From Adineta vaga (lineage: Eukaryota > Animalia > Rotifera): a stretch of DNA of 64,000 nucleotides. The stretch lies in NCBI GenBank assembly GCA_021613535.1, contig CP075493.1, positions 1,860,001 through 1,924,000 of the forward strand, read 5' to 3'. A program made the translations under genes and the position numbers. Below the pieces are notes generated by a model that saw only the letters and a list, made by a program, of their open reading frames with translations, had not been told where the DNA came from and searched no databases. This document shows, piece after piece, positions 3,116-29,185 of this stretch; the first letter of the stretch is position 1; each line of letters begins with the position of its first letter.

Positions 3116-3953
3116 TCGGCCATAGACATAAAACTTGTGGGTGTGATTTGTTCTTACTTAAATCTTCTCGTAGAAGTTTTATATTATTTCCAATATTAGT
3201 TTCTTCTTCGACTATTTTGTCAATTAATGCTGTTCGAATATTTATATAGCATATATAAAGAGAAGAAATTCGCTGGTGAAGAATAAGTCGAGAAAACTAA
3301 GTTATATATATTTCACAAAATTTATTTTCAATCAATGACTAAAACAAAAAAATTCTACTCAACTAATATTTTCATTCGATTTAATTCATATTCAATTAAT
3401 TGATGTTTGATCATGAGTAAATTTTTTCATAAATTCATCTTTAATTTGTTCAAGTTCATTTTCAAACCGTTGTACAATACTTCTAATGGATTTAATATCA
3501 GTTTCATCAGATAAATCCGTTGTTATAAGATTTTGTTTCGATAATTAAGCAATAGAAGGAGTATGATCAACAGCAATTAGTGGAGGTGATATTCAATCAC
3601 ATTTACTAATTATATAGATTATAATAATAAAAACAAAAAATAGAAAGAAAGTTGATACTTACTCTGAAGAAGAATTCATTGGAAAATTTTCCAATAAATA
3701 ATCATTGGTATAATTCTTCTGTTGGTTTAATGTTGACAGAAGATGATCCGATACTTAACAAAAGATTTATTCCATTTAAACATATTTTAGATATTTCAAG
3801 AAATTTTTCAACAATCTTCTCATTATCAAATTGAATAATTGCACATTTGTTATCATTTGGAAGTCTATGACAAGCAATAACATTGCATGTTTATCAAAAT
3901 ATTCTTTTCTTCTAGATTCAATAAAACGAAAATCACAAAATAATCGTTTTTCA

Positions 3954-5258
3954 TCAGAACAATTTACAATTGAATATGAATAAGAATAAAAATAGAAGAA
4001 TAGAAGAATTAATTTGAGATGAAATTGAATGTATTTGTTGTATAGTTGATATCTGACAATAATTGCGACATTTTTCTTCAATGATTGACCACTGATGTCG
4101 ACATTGTTGATAAATTCCAGTTATATTATTTATTTCATATCCTTTCCATTCTTTTGGTGTTTTACATCGTGCAAATGCTGATAAATCAATAGGAAATCGA
4201 TGAAAATCACCGCGTTCATAAGCTTTTTCTAAATGTCGACGAAGTTCTATTCGTGTTATCCAATCATTTAAATAATTTTGTTGATTAAAATCATTCTTAT
4301 TACCTAGTAAAAGTCGATAGATATCTCCATATTTTAAATAAAATAAATCACATGTACAATCAAGTGGATTATTCATTAAGTAAAGTTGACGTAATGATGA
4401 AATATGATAATATGTACAAATATCTAACGAATGAATATTTGAACTAACAAGATCAATTTCAACTAAAGATTTAACACCACAAAATGTTTGTTTTAATGGT
4501 AAAGAAGTATTTTCATTTCGAAAATAATTTCCTCGTAATTTTATTGATTTTAATTGTTGATTGAAAAGAAATAAAAATGACGGAAGATTTTCTAATTGAG
4601 TATTTTCAAGATCAAGATATTGAAGATTTTTCAATGGTTTTAATAGATTATTTGTTAATGAACGTTGTCCTAATGGATTATTATTCAATAGAAGAATTTT
4701 TAAGTTTTTTAATATTAAAAATGCATTAGAATCAATGATTGAAATTTGATTATCGGACAAATCAAGTGTTGTGATTTGATGACAATAAGTAAATATTCCA
4801 TAGGAAAGATAAGTTATGCGATTTTGACGCAAAATTAATGTATTTAAATGTTTTAATCCAAGAAAATCTTGAATAAAAAGTTCATGAAGATGATTTTGAC
4901 TTAGATCGAGTGTATGTAATTGTTTAAGACTACGTAAAAAAGAATTTTCACTTAGAGATTCAAATTGATTATTTTGTAAATTGAGATTGAAGAGAGTTTT
5001 ACTAAAAGATTTGAAGAGATTTCGTGGAAGAGATGAAAGATGATTGGAAGAAAGAATAATCGTATGAACTGATAATGGATAATTTACAAATGTATCTGAT
5101 TCAATTGTTTTTATACCAAGATCATGAAGATCAATAGAAAGAAATGATTGATTTCCAGAATATAATCGATCAAATATTGTGGAATTAAAATGATGAAATG
5201 ATTGTGTATTGGATGAAACTAAAACGTAATAGAAGAACGAAAAAAAATTCATTGACAT
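3954..5258 (-). CDS. Secreted / probably GPI-anchored leucine-rich-repeat protein with LRRCT cap
   Basis: 434-aa ORF: hydrophobic N-terminus, ~10 typical 24-aa LRRs (LHTLDLSQNHL, LNTLILRQNRI, ITTLDLSDNQI), NPLDCTCDL...CKTPKEWKG LRRCT, hydrophobic C-terminal tail. Confidence 0.88.
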   Translation of the reverse strand: MSMNFFSFFYYVLVSSNTQSFHHFNSTIFDRLYSGNQSFLSIDLHDLGIKTIESDTFVNYPLSVHTIILSSNHLSSLPRNLFKSFSKTLFNLNLQNNQFESLSENSFLRSLKQLHTLDLSQNHLHELFIQDFLGLKHLNTLILRQNRITYLSYGIFTYCHQITTLDLSDNQISIIDSNAFLILKNLKILLLNNNPLGQRSLTNNLLKPLKNLQYLDLENTQLENLPSFLFLFNQQLKSIKLRGNYFRNENTSLPLKQTFCGVKSLVEIDLVSSNIHSLDICTYYHISSLRQLYLMNNPLDCTCDLFYLKYGDIYRLLLGNKNDFNQQNYLNDWITRIELRRHLEKAYERGDFHRFPIDLSAFARCKTPKEWKGYEINNITGIYQQCRHQWSIIEEKCRNYCQISTIQQIHSISSQINSSILLFLFLFIFNCKLF

Positions 5259-20391: not shown

Positions 20392-21325
20392 TATTCCCTT
20401 TTCTGAAAGAAAGGGTTATATGCTTCTTAGATAGGGTCGTTAAAATGCTTAAAGTTTATTTGTTTGCCCAAGCCAATCAGGTCAAAGCAGTGTATAAATC
20501 GATGAAAACTTACCCCTGGTCATCGGATAACGATTCGTCACATGTAATCGAGATCGAAGAATACGAATCTTGGGTTGCTTTCCCAAAAATATTTTTCTAT
20601 GAACCATAATTAATTAATTGTTATTTCTTTTTTGTCTAATCCAGTCAGATTGCAGCAATATAAAAATTCATGAAAATTTACTAATAATCATCCGTAAATG
20701 ATTTGCCTAAAAGTAATCGAAGTCGAGGATTTCAAATCTGATGTTAGCTTTTCATAATTCTAATCAATTATTATAATTATTGCGAAACTGAAAATAACCT
20801 GTTATTAAGCATAAAAGAAAAAACTCTGACTGTGAATTATTTAATAAAGCTACTGGGTTAATTGAAGAAATGTTTTTTCAGTAGAAGTTCAGGGTGTGGG
20901 TCTGCAAGGGGGAAAAAGCGGATCCTGGATACCCAAATCCTATAAAACTCTCGGACCCTCATTGGTTATCATTGGTCATCATGAACTGTGTGATCGCAAG
21001 AACTATGATGATCCAGGATCCACCTTTTCCCCTTGTGTGGATGTATGTATGTGCGTACTCTGTCAAGGAACACTTACATCCACACCTTATTCCTTCCACA
21101 GAAAGGAGCGTTATATGGAAAAAAGTTTCTGTGCGCTTTTTTGTCAGTGTCAAAGGTCAAAAAACCATTTTCTTCAAGACTGTCTTAAACATCGGAAACC
21201 GAGAGTAGATTAAGGGTAGGATGATAGGTGGGGTCAATGTGAAAGATCAAGGGTTAAAAGTTAAAGGCTGCACAAGATCAAAATATTGCTCTACCCTTCA
21301 GTACGAGCTAAGTACGCGCTTTCGA
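20392..21325 (+). mobile_element. Non-autonomous Helentron/DINE-1-like (HINE) element(s), probably composite
   Basis: Terminal hairpin TATTCCCTTTTCTGAAAGAAAGGGTTATA; related inverted copy at ~52040-52207; second hairpin GTCATCAT...ATGATGATC (~20975-21013) followed by GTGTGGATGTATGTATGTGCGT microsatellite and GGTCAA-type motifs. Family assignment is inference. Confidence 0.55.
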
Positions 21326-22220
21326 TAGATATAACATGAGATTACAATCAGTCGGTCGTTATTTATTCATAAAATCATTAAAAGTTTAGTAATATTGAAA
21401 TAGAAACTATTGATCATTCTAGAGATGATAATCCAATAAATGAACCCATAGGTAGAATCGAACCCGTAGCAGGTTTGAGAAAAATAAAGTACAGTCAAGT
21501 TTGTCTCATTTGAACACTATTGGAATCAATGAAAAACGTAGGGGAATAAGCAAATCATATAAGAACATCTTAGAGATACGATGGCATAGACATGCAACAG
21601 TGGGAGTTAACTCGGTGAGAGTCAGACTCAAACTTAGTTTATACTTTCATGTGTTTTCTTTTGCTTTTGAGAATATTTGATACACCACCAATTGTTCATA
21701 CAAAAAATTATCTCGCACATCACGATAAGATGAACCGGCTTTGTTTTCTTTAATTCAATTAATTTTCTTGTTAAGATCTTTAAGGATAGACGTATTTGAA
21801 ATAAAAATTGCCTTACGTCGAACTAATAGAATGAAATTAGTTTATGAGGGTATGGAGCGTGAGCGTGAAAAGTAGAGACTATCGGTATCTACCCTCAAAG
21901 ATTTCCTTTTCTGATTGAACTTTTGTTAAATATCACATGCAAAAATATCCTTTCTTAAAACGAACTCTTTTGTAAAACTCAAAAAATTACTAATCGAAAA
22001 TACGTATCTTGAGTGTATACTGACACTCATAATCACATACGTTAACGCCATCTTTCCGCATAAACGAGCTATTCGCTTTTGTCGAAATCGTCAGATTTCA
22101 TATTCTTTTTCGAATAACAAAAATACAATACTATCAATAAAGCGAATTTCTTTTCATAACAAACAAAATATATTCAATAGCTTGTATTCTTAACAAATTT
22201 TTGTGGAATTCAAAGCGAAT

Positions 22221-24089
22221 ATGTACACATTTTCAACATTACCGATTGAACTCGTCTATCGAATTTTGGATCATCTGTCTGATTTTACACTATTTTGTTC
22301 AATGCAAAATGTTTGCCGACGTTTTAATCAAATTCTGACCATTTATCAACGATATCAAGTAAGTTTGCAAAGTGCTTTACCTATTTTCTCATCTGTTCAA
22401 GCACACATGAGCCTCGCAATGTCTAACTTAATCAGTTTACTCAAAGAAAAAACAAATTTCACAATTCCGAAGCAATTTCCACGAGTCAATCAAACACAAC
22501 ATTGACTCATGCTATTAAAACAACCCTTCCTCTCACCTGTTCTTTACTATCTATGCCCATAAAATATATATCTTACTAAACGTGCACTCATGTGCCGCAC
22601 AAGAACAAAACCGCAGCATTAAAACACTTTTCCCGTTTCAAACAAATGTCTCTATTGCAACTCTTAAACAATTCAACACTATTTTTCAAACCCACCCAAT
22701 AAAATAAAGTGAACTGTTTTATATTGTGATCAAAAATAACAATCCAGCACACCTTCACATATTGGTGAAATTCACTCAGCAATTGCGAATTTCTCTTTCC
22801 ATAAACACAGTAATCTTCATTCGCTCTTGTCCTAATTGACCCATCCATGCTCTCTCTCGTCTATAGATACTCACCACACTAGATCTCTGTGGCAATAAAA
22901 TCGGCCATCACGGAGCACAACATATTGGTGCTGCCTTGCGAATAAACACGGTAATACTCATTCGCTCTTGTCCTAATTGACACATCCATGCTCTCTCTCG
23001 TCTAAAGACACTAACCACACTAAATCTCCCATCCAATGAAATCGGTGATCAAGGAGCACAACATATTGGTGATGCCTTGCGAATAAACACGGTAATACTC
23101 ATTCGCTCTTGTCCTAATTGACACATCCATGCTCTCTCTCGTCTATAGACACTCACCACACTAGATCTCGGGTACAATCAAATCGGTGATCAAGGAGCAC
23201 AACATATTGGTGATGCCTTGCGAATAAACACGGTAATACTCGTTCGCTCTTGTCCTAATTGACACATCCATGCTCTCTCTCCTCTATAGACACTCACCAC
23301 ACTAGATCTCTGTGGCAATAAAATTCGTGAACAAGGAGCACAACATATTGGTGATGCCTTGCGAATAAACACAGTTAATACTCATTCGCTCTTCTCCTAA
23401 TTGACACATCCATGCTCTCTCTTGTCTATAGACACTCACCGGCCTAAATCTCGAGTACAATAAAATCGGCCATCACGGAGCACAACATATTGGTGCTGCC
23501 TTGCGAATAAACACGGTAATACTCATTCGCTCTTGTCCTAATTGACACATCCATGCTCTCTCTCGTCTAAAGACACTAACCACACTAAATCTCCCATCCA
23601 ATGAAATCGGTGATCAAGGAGCACAACATATTGGTGCTGCCTTGCGAATAAACACGGTAATACTCATTCGCTCTTGTCCTAATTGACACATCCATGCTCT
23701 CTCTCGTCTATAGACACTCACCGTACTAAATCTCCGGGACAATCAAATCGGCCATCACGGAGCACAACATATTGGTGATGCCTTGCGAATAAACACAGTT
23801 AATACTCATTCGCTCTTCTCCTAATTGACACATCCATGCCCTCTCTTGTCTATAGACACTCATCGCATTAGATCTCGCGTGGGATCAAATCGGCGATCAA
23901 GGAGCACAACATATTGGTGATGCCTTGCGAATAAACACGGTAATATTCATTCGCTCTTGTCCTAATTGACACATTCATGCTCTCTCTCCTCTATAGACAC
24001 TCACCACTCTAAATCTCGAGGACAATCAAATCGGCGATCAAGAAAGAAAGTATCTCCGAAATACTTTTGGAAATAGGTTGACGTTATAA
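22221..24089 (+). CDS. F-box + 9x 28-aa RNI/NLRC3-like LRR protein, one LRR per exon (~300 aa)
   Basis: Exon 1 22221-22358 F-box 'MYTFSTLPIELVYRILDHLSDFTLFCSMQNVCRRFNQIL'; LRR exons 22867-22950, 23008-23091, 23149-23232, 23290-23373, 23432-23515, 23573-23656, 23714-23797, 23856-23939, 23997-24089(TAA); all GT-AG, phase 0, no in-frame stops; consensus TLTxLxLxxNxIGDQGAQHIGDALRINT. Confidence 0.92.
22810..24042 (+). repeat. Tandem array of ~9 exon+intron units, period 141-142 bp
   Basis: Intron unit GTAATACTCATTCGCTCTTGTCCTAATTGACACATCCATGCTCTCTCTCGTCTATAG (57-58 nt) repeated 9 times, each followed by an LRR exon. Confidence 0.97.
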
Positions 24090-26832
24090 TTGGGAGTCGA
24101 GGAACATTGTTTTTAGTGCTCTTTTCTGGAGAGTTTTTTCATAGGGAACCGATCTGGTGAAGAATGAATACACAGTTTGCTTCGAAGTCGTATTTATCGT
24201 ACAATAACGTGTTTTGTTTTAAGCTCTTGATTTCCGACCGTGAGAGATGTGTTTAGCATTTAAGTTGTTGATTTGTTTATGTCCGAGGTAGGGAAATCTC
24301 GTATTTGAAATGCACTATAATTTATAAATTGAAGTTTGATGGGTATCATATGATATTTTGTGAAACTGTCTACTCTTAATATAGTGTCTTCTGAAAATGT
24401 TTCAATAGTGGAAAGGTTATGAAGAAGAAGGATGACCGTCGATGCGTGTTATGAGCCTTTCAATCGGTCCGCTGCACTTATTCCCATGGGTGATCTATTA
24501 GGAACGACTGGGAAATTATTTCTTAAACATTATGTTGTGCATGAAAACGTAGCAAAATATTCTTCCGAACTTTTTTTTGAATATTTCTTATAATAGAGAG
24601 TTTAGTTTAAAGTCTGAGTGCCTCACAAATCGTTACTATATTTGTAACGTTAGAGAGTTGGGGTTGACGTCAAGATAAAGTGAATGACGAGTTTGACAAC
24701 TTTATTTAGTTGCTTCTTTTATTTGACGTTTGATGTCTAATGATAGAAAGATGTTTTGTATTCGTACATCTTTCAAGATAAAAAAGTAAGTTTTAGAGAA
24801 AAGAGTGTATCGCAGTCTGAATTAACTAATGATTAGAGACACAATTTAGGATATAAATCGCATCTGGATGCAACTTCCGATATATTCGAGCTTAAATGAA
24901 AGACGACAAAATGCATTTGTAAACACAAAGAGTGTTTCATATTTACATAGTGACCCGTACTTATTAGTCCTTTCCTATTCATTATCATTCTGAGAATTAC
25001 AAGAGTATGATTAATTCGCGAGTAGTAAAGTCGTTCTGTCTTAAGTTTACACATATTTCTTTTTGAATATATTCATCATCGGTGTCGATGAAACCGACTA
25101 TACTAGATCTGTCGAAGTTTTTCATGCTGTGCATTCAAATAACTACACATGATAATGAACATTTAGTTGTTGAATGTACATCCAAAATAGTTTCTTTATC
25201 TAATATGAAGATTTTGTTTATTTGAGAAATCAATGTGAACTGCCTTTCTGAATTCATCGATTGTGATGAACATTTCTTCTAAAATATACCATCGACGCAT
25301 GTATCATGACATTTGTTTCATTGAACCGATGGCATATGGATCACTGACTTTTTGACTATGAATATATTCATGAAGTATATAATTGTCATATTTACACTAA
25401 ATGGAAATGTTCTTTCATATAATATTGGTATTTTAACAAAGATAGGATTATATCTAACATGAATTAACAAATAATATATAACATTAGTCTAAAAGAGATA
25501 ACAAAATTAATGATAAACTTTGCTTGGTTTGATTCAATCAATTTGGATTGCAATGCTCTAAATATATTTGTAAAAAAGTATCGAATTCGTATAATAGTTA
25601 CCTGTAACCTTTGAACAATTTCACAGCATCCAAACAACGAGAATTCAAACGAGTGTTGCATCATAACCAAGATAAAAATGAAGACATGATCAAACGTCAT
25701 TCGAAAGACGAGCTTGTAAATTTTAAAATAATCGATTGTAAACGGATATTATCCATTGTCATAATTAGGTAAATAACTATTGAATCTATACAAAAAATTC
25801 AATAAACTCTTTTTCTTTATTTTCTAATACTTGATGTTTCCAGATAAAAACTGTCTCTTCTATCAGAAAACATATACATTTTGACCAAAATTATAGACTA
25901 TATGATTGTTCGGTCTTTTTTCAATGTTTTAAATTCTAATGAAAACAAATAATAATGTTGATGTCTTGCGTAGAAGAAGTTTTTCTTTTCTACTTTCATG
26001 GCAAAAGAAATAAAAAAAACTTCCATATTTAGACTTACGAAATGAGAACAAAATTAAAAATGAACATTCCGTAAATTTCATCTATATTTCTACTCATTTT
26101 GTTTCTTATTTATAGACAAGCAGTAATTTATTAGAGCAACTCTATTTTCATTTAATTATCATAAGTGTTCTAATCCTTTTTGATCATTGTCTTTGAAGGT
26201 AGTATTTGTTTAAAGCATCATGTGATATATCCTTCTCATTATCGTCTTTCGATAGATCCCTATTATTTTATTCTTCTATAGAATAATTTTGTCTATTCAT
26301 TTATGTAAATCTAGGTTTACAATAGAAGAACTTCTGGAATACTCGACTGTTTTTTTCGAAACCTATTTAATTCTCATTTGATCGTATCTTACGTTAATAT
26401 TACGAGAAACTATGTTTTATTTCAGATTCTCTCAACATTAAAAATCTATTGTGGAACACTTTCATATCATTTTCCTTCGAAACAATTTGAGGTCAATTAC
26501 CTCTATACTTTCCGAAATATACATAATACATTATGACTTTCTCATATAGCTCAATGGAATATTCACTCGTTGATAATTCAATATATTGTAATCAATTGCT
26601 TTTTTTAGTATCGTGTGTTCCATAATTTCGTTATTTATCAGCAAATTTATTACGTCAATATGGTCCTACACAACCAAATTTATATGGTATGATGTTGATT
26701 AATTTGACATATGCATCTTTTAAATTCAAATCCGACGTAGTTGATATTTTTGAACAATTTTTTATCAATCATTTTCCTACTATTGAAATTTTATTCATCA
26801 CATCAGATATTACGTAGATGTATAAAAGCCTA

Positions 26833-28667
26833 CTTTGAAAATAAAAAAGGAGTTTTCGAGAACCTTTTTGGAGGTTCGGCCCGCTGGTAAAATTCAGAAC
26901 CCACAAAAAGCTTCTGGCTCAAAGAGGGTTCTGTTAAAACCTAACAGAACTTTTCATTATTCTATACAAAAATAAGGTTCAGTCTGACATAAAAGGTGTG
27001 TTTAATGGTTTTTCAGAAAATTATTTTCTCTTTATATCTAGGTTGATTTGTGCACGTATTCCAGTGTCGCAAGTGCGTCTTTTTATGTTAAGCTCTCAAA
27101 TAGACCGAAAGAGTGAATTAAGCTACAGTCGAATCACGCTTTTTGCCTGCTACCGATTGGCTCAATTCAGCCCTAACCTAAGTCACTTTCTCAGTCTGTT
27201 TTTGACCTTGTAATATAAACAGACACACTTGCAGTACTTGAATACGTGTACAAATCAACCTAGATATAAAAAGAAAATCATTCTACTTTTATTTCTAATA
27301 TCCCACTTACCATTTCTCTGCAATATAGATCGGTCTAAATATAAAAGAAGAAAATATTTAGTTTTCTATATAAAATATAACTCACATTTCGTTAGACTTT
27401 CGATCTGAATCTAAATGACAATAGAAAATATTCAATCTAAAATTCAAAGTATCAATCAACTTTAATCAGATATGGCTATGAACCGAAATGATAACAATAA
27501 ATATTTAACATATTGTTTTGAAAATAAATCATTTTTACCCACATATCTATACAAACCTAAATGATAATAGAGAATGTTTCATTTCGTATTTAAAATATTA
27601 CTTACTCTTAATCAAATATCGATATGTACCTATACAACAATAAGAAATATTTCATATGATATTTAGTTTCGAAAGCTGTCCGAATAGAGAAACCGCTGAA
27701 AAAGATCATTTTATTTGTAAAGAATATTTTCAAAAGATTGAGCTCGGTGAAATGATAAACTTTTGAATAGTTCTTTAGTTCATTTCATCAGAGTTCATGG
27801 ACTTGAGCTGATCAACTCCTACCCTCTATTGTTGACATAACATATAAGTTAGTTTGAGCTATATTAGAGCCGTTCTCTGTTAACTTGTAACTGCCCTGAA
27901 CATGATTTTGTTACATGTAAGTAATAAGAGAAAAACCTTCCTCATATTTGGATGACTGAAAAACTGCTTGGAATAATCATATACTGATAGTGGACTCTCA
28001 CCATCGTCGATGCAAAACATTAAGTTGTTCAGTTCATACCTAAGATCGTTATTGACAACTTGAAATGGCCAAAGCATTTCCGTTTTTTGTTATGACAAAA
28101 CTCAAAAGAGAAAAGAAAGTTGTTAAATTGTTGTTGACTTGCATGAACAAACGAACGTATATACATTTTTGAGTGTGTGACTCTGTTCTTCAGTTGAGGA
28201 AACTTACGATACTCCAACATTCACTGAGGCAGCTATATCAGGTTGCGGATTTTAGAGAAGAAACTTCACATTTAGTAACGTCGAAGGAAAAAATCTCTAT
28301 GATTCAATATTATCAGACCGAACCCTTTCAAACTGAGTATTTTTGGGCAGAATCCTTTTGGTTCAAAATAAATAAAACAGAACTTTTTTAAGTTCTGCAG
28401 TTGTACTACCGAACCAACTGGATTCAGTTTCGTCTCACGAAGGAGTTTTCAAGGTTCAGTAGAAAAATATCTAAACATTCTGTAGTTTAAGGGATGACTG
28501 ACAAAACTCTTCATAGTTTAGAATTGTCGGACAAAACCCTTTGTAGTTCAGAATTGTTGCCCAGAACCTTTCTTGGTTTCTCATATGTCATACAGAACCT
28601 TTTCCGGTTCTGAAGATGTTGCAGAACCCAAAAAGGTTTTGGAACACTCCTTTTCTTCTTTTAGAGG
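26833..28667. mobile_element. ~1.8-kb non-autonomous DNA transposon with GAACC-rich subterminal repeats
   Basis: Left CTTTGAAAATAAAAAAGGAGTTTTCGAGAACCTTTTTGG resembles revcomp of right end CCTCTAAAAGAAGAAAAGGAGTGTTCCAAAACCTTTTTGGG; repeated AGAACC/GGTTC motifs near both ends; no transposase ORF. Confidence 0.72.
27015..27284. mobile_element. ~270-bp MITE nested in the 26.8-28.7 kb element
   Basis: ~70-bp TIRs: TTTATATCTAGGTTGATTTGTGCACGTATTC ... GAATACGTGTACAAATCAACCTAGATATAAA. Confidence 0.82.
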
Positions 28668-29185
28668 ATAGATAAAAACAATTAATATCATTATATTTAT
28701 CAAATTTACGTATTTTTAATGTTCGACTAGTACCGATCGGTCCTCAGAGAGAGAATATCTAAATAGAAGATTTTGTTCAGTTTTCGATGCTGTATCTTTT
28801 AGTACATTAAACGAATAGTTTCGGGAGTGGTTGTCAGTAAATTTGATGTATTTTTTTATTCGTTCAACCAGATGCGCTAAAATTCGGATCTCGAGGTTTT
28901 CAATGATGCTGAACAAAATCAAAACATAAAATCAAGAGGAGAAATTTTGACGAGTGTTTCTTCTCTTTAAGAGAGTTTTTTAAAGAATATAGATGCGTTA
29001 ATCATCATTATAGTTCTTTCAGAGAGGGGTCAGCGAATCCTACAGATGAGCGTTGCTTGTATAGATACGTTGAACACAATAAAACTGAGCTAACGAATAA
29101 AATTCGCATTAGTTTAGAAAAAGACTAATCGTCTTTCTTAATTCACTTTGATTCAATCAATTAGTCAGTCTGCTTGAGACGAATG

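Follow-up and report, generated by a model that had tools for sequence, protein, structure and literature searches.

A bdelloid rotifer F-box gene family with one leucine-rich repeat per exon and diversified codons on its presumptive binding face

The stretch of DNA analysed here (the window) comprises 64,000 nucleotides (nt) of contig CP075493.1 from Adineta vaga, a bdelloid rotifer. At positions 22221–24089 of its plus strand lies a gene in which an F-box exon precedes a row of equal-sized exons, each encoding a single leucine-rich repeat (LRR). The locus raises a question: is this array, with its uniform introns and a handful of highly variable codons, a working recognition gene, the cargo of a mobile element, or a young repeat on its way to decay? 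The evidence set out below indicates that the locus is probably one member of a bdelloid F-box family that carries a solenoid of ribonuclease inhibitor (RI)/NLR-type LRRs, one repeat per exon and presumably substrate-binding, and that would constitute a germline recognition repertoire.

The gene structure, rechecked base by base, consists of (i) an F-box exon, (ii) a 508-nt intron, (iii) eight 84-nt LRR exons separated by introns of 57 or 58 nt, and (iv) a 90-nt last exon. Exon 1 (22221–22358) supplies the ATG and the F-box in 46 codons and ends in phase 0 at a GTAAGT donor (22359). Intron 1 (22359–22866) is delimited by alignment with 20 paralogues and by a gap in read depth that is described below. 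Exon and splice-site parsing places the LRR exons at 22867–22950 (ILTTLDLCGNKIGHHGAQHIGAALRINT), 23008–23091 (TLTTLNLPSNEIGDQGAQHIGDALRINT), 23149–23232 (TLTTLDLGYNQIGDQGAQHIGDALRINT), 23290–23373 (TLTTLDLCGNKIREQGAQHIGDALRINT), 23432–23515 (TLTGLNLEYNKIGHHGAQHIGAALRINT), 23573–23656 (TLTTLNLPSNEIGDQGAQHIGAALRINT; the initial 45 nt are those of exon 2), 23714–23797 (TLTVLNLRDNQIGHHGAQHIGDALRINT) and 23856–23939 (TLIALDLAWDQIGDQGAQHIGDALRINT). Every one of them is preceded by AG, followed by GT, and encodes one RI-type LRR of 28 amino acids (aa); all eight peptides take the form TLTTLxLxxNxIGxxGAQHIGxALRINT. The GT..AG unit introns occupy 22951–23007, 23092–23148, 23233–23289 and 23374–23431 (57, 57, 57 and 58 nt), followed by 23516–23572, 23657–23713, 23798–23855 and 23940–23996 (57, 57, 58 and 57 nt). 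The last exon (23997–24086; TLTTLNLEDNQIGDQERKYLRNTFGNRLTL) contributes half an LRR and a C-terminal tail in 30 codons, with a TAA stop at 24087–24089.

All internal exons are symmetric (phase 0-0) and equal in length, such that the reading frame survives the loss of any one of them. Tandem Repeats Finder resolves the array into 8.8 copies of a 141-nt period, at 88% matches. Within this regular framework, codons 8–9 of the nine units read TGTGGC, CCATCC, GGGTAC, TGTGGC, GAGTAC, CCATCC, CGGGAC, GCGTGG and GAGGAC. An earlier reading of the locus, made from the sequence only, had described an F-box gene assembled from phase-0 cassettes of one LRR per exon; its exon coordinates, peptides, introns and codons 8–9 were all reproduced. 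The cassette design lies far beyond what chance would produce. The same design, with frames and splice sites kept, recurs in 20 other arrays.

What would such a gene encode? For domain searches the exons were queried singly, and database homologues stood in for the full-length protein in searches and fold predictions. Exon 1 scores above the cut-off against two Pfam profiles: PF12937 F-box-like (28.3 bits, cut-off 24.3; E=1.5e-6) and PF00646 F-box (27.1 bits, cut-off 20.5; E=3.7e-6). Its LPxE...VC+RF pattern is conserved in 21/21 paralogues. Single LRR exons match PF13516 (LRR_6), with exon 3 reaching 29.2 bits against a cut-off of 23.4 and exon 2 an E of 6.3e-5. These matches, the exact 28-aa period, and the strand and helix seen in each repeat of a homologue model place the repeats in the RI-type (RNI-like) class. 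Sequence matches in the PDB include RI-like proteins (E=1.5e-38), RNH1 (E=2.9e-23) and the LRRs of RipG4/GALA. In an AlphaFold2 model of a 302-aa homologue from Rotaria socialis, the LRR part has a predicted local distance difference test score (pLDDT) of 88–96, and each repeat forms a short strand at positions 4–6 and a helix at positions 14–26. The top structural matches of this model are the NOD2 LRR domain (root-mean-square deviation 1.2–1.4 Å, 31% identity), DRC5, NLRPs and ribonuclease inhibitor; RipG4/GALA LRRs also figure among its fold matches. By sequence and fold together, the LRR domain is nearest to the RI/NLR-type solenoids of NOD2, NLRPs, RNH1 and the axonemal proteins DRC5/LRRC34.

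The solvent-facing x residues of LxxLxLxxN, together with the following loop, make up the canonical concave binding face of LRR proteins. Given where the homologue model places strand and helix, the variable positions of the rotifer repeats are therefore these same x residues and the loop that follows. The sequence-only reading had assigned the variable codons to the x positions of LxxLxLxxN, and the model agrees with that assignment, putting them in and just after the short beta-strand.

The gene is not alone. A search of the 100.8 Mb assembly (six contigs) with a two-unit probe of the 141-nt repeat returned at least 253 matches, spread over five of the six chromosomes. At least 135 places match the F-box exon; nearly all are open reading frames (ORFs), and about 45 reach an identity of 80% or more. 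The close copies are concentrated towards chromosome ends: 34 of the 45 lie within the distal 20% (p=1.4e-6). We fetched 20 paralogous arrays and, together with the window array, parsed 21 arrays containing 286 units, with 4–23 units per array. The acceptor AG is kept in 284 of these units and the donor GT in all 286, with both kept in 284; stop codons occur in two. The intron sites of the same units differ from consensus by 10%, and had the exons drifted like the introns, one would expect stops in about 67 units and an intact splice pair in only about 186. The F-box exon is intact in all 21 arrays, and the last exon has 30 codons with the same stop position in most paralogues. One annotated A. 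vaga member, I4U23_017691, shows the same spliced architecture. Otherwise, public A. vaga annotation appears to model few members; the sole match near an array, a chimeric model marked 'partial', has its end in the F-box exon. This large family is maintained intact by selection. In searches of the open literature we found only general mention of LRR family expansions in A. vaga (PMC3846280), and no description of this F-box/LRR family.

How has selection acted on the different parts of the unit? Per-codon diversity was calculated for 218 units in register across the 21 arrays. Unit introns have a diversity of p = 0.169. For the LRR scaffold codons, synonymous diversity (pS) is 0.163 and non-synonymous diversity (pN) 0.062, a pN/pS of 0.38 that, being drawn from pairwise comparison among recombining repeats, is an imperfect measure. 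By contrast with these, codons 3, 4, 6, 8, 9, 11 and 14 have a pN of 0.323, and codons 8–9 alone one of 0.507. In the F-box exon, pN is 0.032 and pS 0.136 (ratio 0.24; 21 arrays), with a mean p of 0.158 for the adjoining intron 1. A comparison of binding-face codons with introns across all copies had been proposed as the check on the sequence-only reading, and its outcome is uniform: in 21/21 arrays, the pN of the variable codons exceeds that array's own synonymous and intron diversity.

Changes were also counted by parsimony on a tree built from introns and scaffold codons only. On this tree, non-synonymous changes outnumber synonymous ones by 160 to 8 at codon 9 (dN/dS 3.4, p=5e-5), by 92 to 3.5 at codon 11 (dN/dS 4.9, p=4e-4) and by 56 to 1 at codon 14 (dN/dS 7, p=0.01), while codons 2, 5, 7, 20 and 27 (leucine, isoleucine, asparagine) are strongly purified. 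Judged from these sequence comparisons, the F-box and the leucine/asparagine scaffold are under purifying selection, and the concave-face positions 3, 4, 6, 8, 9, 11 and 14 far exceed neutral sites in non-synonymous change. The resulting variety is considerable. Among 318 units there are 187 distinct seven-residue concave-face signatures, only 24 of which are common to several arrays, and 64 different residue pairs at positions 8–9; all but one of the signatures of the window gene are private to it.

If the binding-face codons vary so freely, why are the introns between them so alike? Within the window array, the helical half differs by 0–2 nt between units and introns of equal length by 0–4 nt, while codons 1–12 differ by up to 11 of 36 nt. 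The sequence-only reading had called the introns near-invariant. This holds within the window array, where intron diversity is 0.017; it fails as a statement of constraint, as genome-wide the introns are as diverse as synonymous sites, and individual arrays range from 0.00 to 0.22. Functional constraint on the unit introns was accordingly rejected: their diversity (0.169) equals that of synonymous sites (0.163), and their sequence is not conserved between species. The uniformity of introns within an array is instead the footprint of recent unit duplication, or concerted evolution.

Comparison of sister genes illustrates the pace of this turnover. The closest pair by intron 1 (1.5% divergence) has 21 versus 19 units in a partly different order. 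Genes at 4–5% intron-1 divergence have 11 versus 10 units, or 4 versus 20 versus 16, and their signatures differ. Internal higher-order repeats of two to four units are also found within arrays. In the window array, different segments of the unit give different groupings: units 1 and 4, and units 2 and 6, group together over codons 1–12; units 1, 5 and 7 over codons 13–15; and over the helical half and intron, unit 4 goes with 7 and unit 1 with 5. Such conflict requires recombination or conversion whose breakpoints fall within units. A long identical stretch (~110 nt) runs from the helix half through the intron into the beginning of the next exon; it is the obvious substrate for recombination, by which the variable segments of ~40 nt are shuffled. 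The suggestion of exon shuffling or gene conversion, made from the sequence alone, is supported by units that were gained, lost and reordered between sister genes and recombined within themselves.

The design extends beyond A. vaga. Homologues annotated as 'F-box domain-containing protein' occur in A. ricciae, A. steineri and several Rotaria species, and two of them were mapped to their genomic loci, in A. ricciae and R. socialis. Both have an F-box exon ending in ...YQ that is spliced straight to the first LRR exon across an intron 1 of 734 and 1138 nt, respectively, followed by 84-nt LRR exons and 57-nt introns. The last exon measures 90 nt in R. socialis (30 codons, with the stop in the same place) and 144 nt in A. 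ricciae. In neither species are the unit introns related in sequence to their A. vaga counterparts; the 57-nt length is all that they have in common. Since the same design is found in Adineta and Rotaria, the cassette design is older than the split between Adinetidae and Philodinidae. The burst that gave A. vaga its near-identical copies is recent.

Three further observations belong here. In the R. socialis gene (nt 1876–2071; locus positions 3876–4071), an annotated 196-nt 'intron' holds an 84-nt LRR exon (TLTALFLDNAEIEKPGIAYLAGALRNST) that is intact and in frame and lies between introns of 57 and 55 nt with good splice sites. Either the annotation is wrong here or the exon is truly skipped, and we treat the case as a lead rather than as evidence. 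Elsewhere among bdelloids, RI-type LRR arrays are annotated as fused to RING/B-box domains (including A. vaga I4U23_013293), to a U-box and kinase, and to arginine ADP-ribosyltransferase. These fusions suggest that LRR sensors are combined with effectors in a wider range of ways; some of them may be fused in the gene models only. Lastly, matches to the LRRs include Mortierellaceae fungi and a metagenome-assembled genome of Rickettsiaceae; such similarity is an unreliable guide to horizontal origin, the repeats being consensus-like and the genes intron-rich.

Are members of the family transcribed? The available read evidence consists of short contigs only, too short to phase exons, and runs X1, X2 and X3 were labelled RNA by guess. 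Runs X2 and X3 cover exon 1 and the array, with zero depth over 22405–22890, and an X3 contig over exon 1 ceases to match at 22358, the last base of that exon. In several X2/X3 contigs, the end of one LRR exon is joined directly to the start of another. The exon-exon junction string has 0 occurrences in the genome (the exon-intron form has 166); as the string is present in contigs and absent from the genome, spliced family transcripts exist. At position 22318, where the window copy has G (Arg, CGA) and all 20 paralogues encode Gln, contigs of X2, X3 and X8 all have A; either these contigs derive from paralogues, or strains differ. No exon-skipping junction was seen in the short contigs of the RNA-type runs. 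One joint in X2 that 'skips 656' was rejected as exon skipping: 34 of its letters are unrelated, and it resembles a contig from a paralogue. As a separate observation, a perfect 258-nt contig of run X1 (depth 2) matches 22373–22630 on the minus strand, inside intron 1. It comes from the window locus, because paralogues differ by ~10% there, and it may represent unspliced RNA, antisense RNA or DNA carry-over.

The surroundings of the gene introduce an alternative. The window gene lies in a dispersed repeat block of ~8.7 kb (20392–29060, plus strand), and each close gene copy sits within such a block, 9–11 kb long in copies with longer arrays. The block might be a non-autonomous transposon or a transduced segment with the gene as its cargo, the gene owing its spread to that of the element. 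It might even work for the element and not for the host, for instance against host factors, in the manner of viral and bacterial F-box effectors. Much about the block's form invites this reading. At least 20 copies have the same sharp left end at 20392–20394 (TTCCCTTTTCTGAAAG...), and the DNA upstream of it is unrelated. The right end (...GATGAGCGTTGCTTGT, at 29060) likewise gives way to unrelated DNA, and block copies have the terminus ...GATGAGCGTTACTTGT in common. Defined common termini are thereby present in many dispersed copies, as in transposable elements. The final ~250 nt are also found, like a transposon end, in 15 or more places that have no F-box exon close by; some copies begin further in (20424, 20608, 20958, 21768), in a manner resembling 5' truncation; and the non-coding parts are 90–97% identical between copies. 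An A. vaga LRR family member, which may or may not belong to the present family, has been described with a Penelope pLTR at its 3' end, in an account of intron-retaining, Penelope-mediated gene mobilisation (Arkhipova et al. 2013, PMC3846280). Set against this, a search of the block outside the F-box/LRR gene found no Pfam-matching ORF (no transposase or reverse transcriptase), Rfam family, tRNA, ribozyme or coding-like composition. Target-site duplication was inconsistent in the ten copies with both flanks read (in the window copy alone, AGATA stands on either side of the block, offset by 2 nt, perhaps by chance), and no terminal inverted repeat was found at the very ends. Moreover, the gene design shared with A. 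ricciae and Rotaria, in which the intron sequence is unrelated, makes the gene family much older than the block, and a purified F-box and scaffold with a diversified binding face fit a gene that benefits its host; mobilisation explains copy number, not function. That the gene is in essence mobile-element cargo is unlikely in our estimation. Two internal features of the block are recorded here in their own right. An inverted repeat with 72-nt arms (27019–27090 and 27211–27282; 86% complementary, 120 nt apart) lies in a 745-nt segment (26547–27292) that is absent from two block copies and may be a nested insertion. The stretch 20866–21210, where G+C (0.41) is higher than anywhere else in the upstream half of the block, contains a pair of overlapping ORFs (115 and 107 aa, in different frames) and an inverted repeat of 22 nt (20909–20930 and 21011–21032), with no Pfam or Rfam match.

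A host-serving recognition family, the reading that we prefer, must also be set against the observations that weigh against it, some of which concern the window copy itself. Its intron 1 is ~300 nt shorter than in all 20 paralogues, the missing part lying just upstream of the paralogues' first LRR exon. In its place, at 22745–22809, intron 1 holds a degenerate second half of an LRR unit (resembling the unit end ...CATATTGGTGA...ATAAACACA|GTAATC) with insertions, an in-frame upstream stop and no phase-compatible acceptor, followed by a normal 57-nt unit intron (22810–22866). The 5' end of the window array is locally rearranged, and the copy could be a recently disabled one. None of the spliced contigs could be assigned to the window copy: the sole covered diagnostic base (22318) is paralogue-like, and LRR exon 5 has zero depth in any run. 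Among the paralogues, three last exons have an earlier stop and one has lost its stop. Confidence in the R. socialis homologue model is only moderate over the F-box part (pLDDT ~57–64). As to selection, the imperfection of pairwise pN/pS has been noted, and codon 8 changes at the rate of codon 9 but with an inflated synonymous count as well, which could come from whole-codon replacements or recombination. The excess at codons 8–9 could, in part, be old variation that was spared while the remainder was homogenised, rather than new substitutions. Under either origin of the excess, diversity at the concave-face codons is favoured by selection. Taken to their extreme, several of these points would make the arrays decaying, recently amplified pseudogenes or satellite-like repeats, whose open frames merely reflect youth; the sparse public annotation, with its one 'partial' chimeric model, could be read the same way. 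We consider this very improbable. At ~10% intron-site divergence, stops in 2 of 286 units and splice pairs in 284 of 286 depart far from the expected ~67 and ~186; pN/pS is well below one in the F-box and the LRR scaffold; and the family yields spliced transcripts and has a design conserved across bdelloid families. A different proposal is that one gene gives many receptors within a single animal, by regulated exon skipping or somatic unit recombination. Equal-length, symmetric internal exons would permit it, the R. socialis model skips an intact in-frame LRR exon, and alternative splicing has been reported for the exon-per-LRR ROCO genes of brown algae (PMC11378527). However, the short contigs contain no skipped-exon junction, the sole 'skip' joint looks like a paralogue contig, the Rotaria exon may be an annotation error, and there is no sign of somatic rearrangement; such within-animal diversification seems quite unlikely.

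Which known systems does the family resemble? In gene design and evolutionary mode, it is nearest to the exon-per-LRR ROCO genes of brown algae, and in its logic to the F-box adaptor families of nematodes and plants. The LRR-ROCO genes of Ectocarpus are exon-per-LRR shuffling receptors (Zambounis et al. 2012, PMC3341825; PMC11378527). Like them, the rotifer genes have each LRR in an equal-length, symmetric exon, gain, lose and shuffle units (unit number and order vary between paralogues, from 4 to 23 units), contain degenerate units in introns, show positive selection on concave-face residues, and have a proposed role in variable recognition. They differ in repeat length and class (24 aa or 72 nt in Ectocarpus; 28 aa or 84 nt, RI type, in the rotifer) and in the partner domain, which is a ROC-COR GTPase in Ectocarpus, absent from the rotifer gene, and an F-box in the rotifer. 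Unlike the Ectocarpus ROCO genes, those of the rotifer reside in an animal host and are amplified as dispersed 9–11 kb blocks. With the F-box genes of Caenorhabditis (PMC8665587) and the plant FBX superfamily (PMC3030570), the rotifer family has in common lineage-specific bursts, a conserved F-box beside a fast-evolving substrate-binding domain, birth-and-death evolution, and a suggested link to immunity or conflict. Neither the Caenorhabditis nor the plant families are described as single-repeat cassette exons with array turnover. Caenorhabditis F-box families carry FTH/FBA2-type domains.

Other parallels concern the domains rather than the genes. The repeat LxxLxLxxNxIGxxGAxxLxxAL, of 28 aa, is that of NLR and RI proteins (NOD2, NLRPs, RNH1), and vertebrate RI/NLR LRRs are likewise encoded by modular in-frame exons. 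The rotifer exon, however, corresponds to one repeat, not two; the gene has no NACHT or other nucleotide-binding domain (F-box and LRR exons only, with no other Pfam match); and its predicted output is ubiquitination via an SKP1–cullin–F-box (SCF) ligase rather than the oligomerisation of NLRs. An N-terminal F-box directly before an LRR solenoid that acts as substrate receptor is also the arrangement of FBXL proteins (Skp2) and of the bacterial GALA/RipG effectors. FBXL repeats are of the cysteine-containing type, at ~26 aa. The rotifer repeats, at 28 aa and of RI type, fall outside the strict FBXL subtype; a Pfam match to the FBXL15-type LRR was faint and found on the A. ricciae homologue only. 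GALA proteins are secreted bacterial effectors without introns, unlike the rotifer genes. Finally, the variable lymphocyte receptors of lampreys have diversity at the same x positions of the LxxLxLxxN concave face and are built of LRR cassettes. Their germline gene is incomplete and is assembled somatically from flanking cassettes, whereas the rotifer germline genes are complete, with start, array and stop.

Returning to the family as a probable germline recognition repertoire, its workings can be sketched as follows. Block copies sit mainly in distal chromosome regions. Duplication, deletion and recombination of units, with breakpoints in the conserved helix-plus-intron stretch, turn the arrays over quickly, and the ~40-nt variable segments are reshuffled in the process. 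The F-box is predicted to dock the protein on SKP1/cullin, and the concave LRR face to select a protein for ubiquitination, which might be foreign, transposon-derived or self. Docking by the one and substrate choice by the other would together amount to a set of degradation adaptors that is encoded in the germline and covers many specificities. A bolder version is tempting, if rather unlikely: the bdelloid family, perhaps with its sister RING/B-box, U-box-kinase and ADP-ribosyltransferase arrays, might form in these ancient asexuals an intracellular, germline-diversified 'degradative immune' repertoire, under continual reshuffling through unequal recombination in subtelomeric regions, recognising pathogen, virus or transposon proteins and directing them to the proteasome, with exon skipping possibly adding to the diversity.

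The apparently poor modelling of these genes in public A. vaga annotation means that the family is easily missed in expression studies. As a genetic system, it shows in a clean, natural case how domain reshuffling is promoted by cassette exons of one repeat each and homogenised introns. For bdelloids it may mean more. These animals persist without conventional sex, and it is an open question by what means they keep up with parasites, viruses and transposons. With binding faces diversified by selection, and arrays remodelled faster than their flanks diverge, dozens to more than 100 F-box adaptors would present a concrete candidate system for rapidly adaptable recognition in an animal, and would parallel what has been proposed for brown algae and nematodes.

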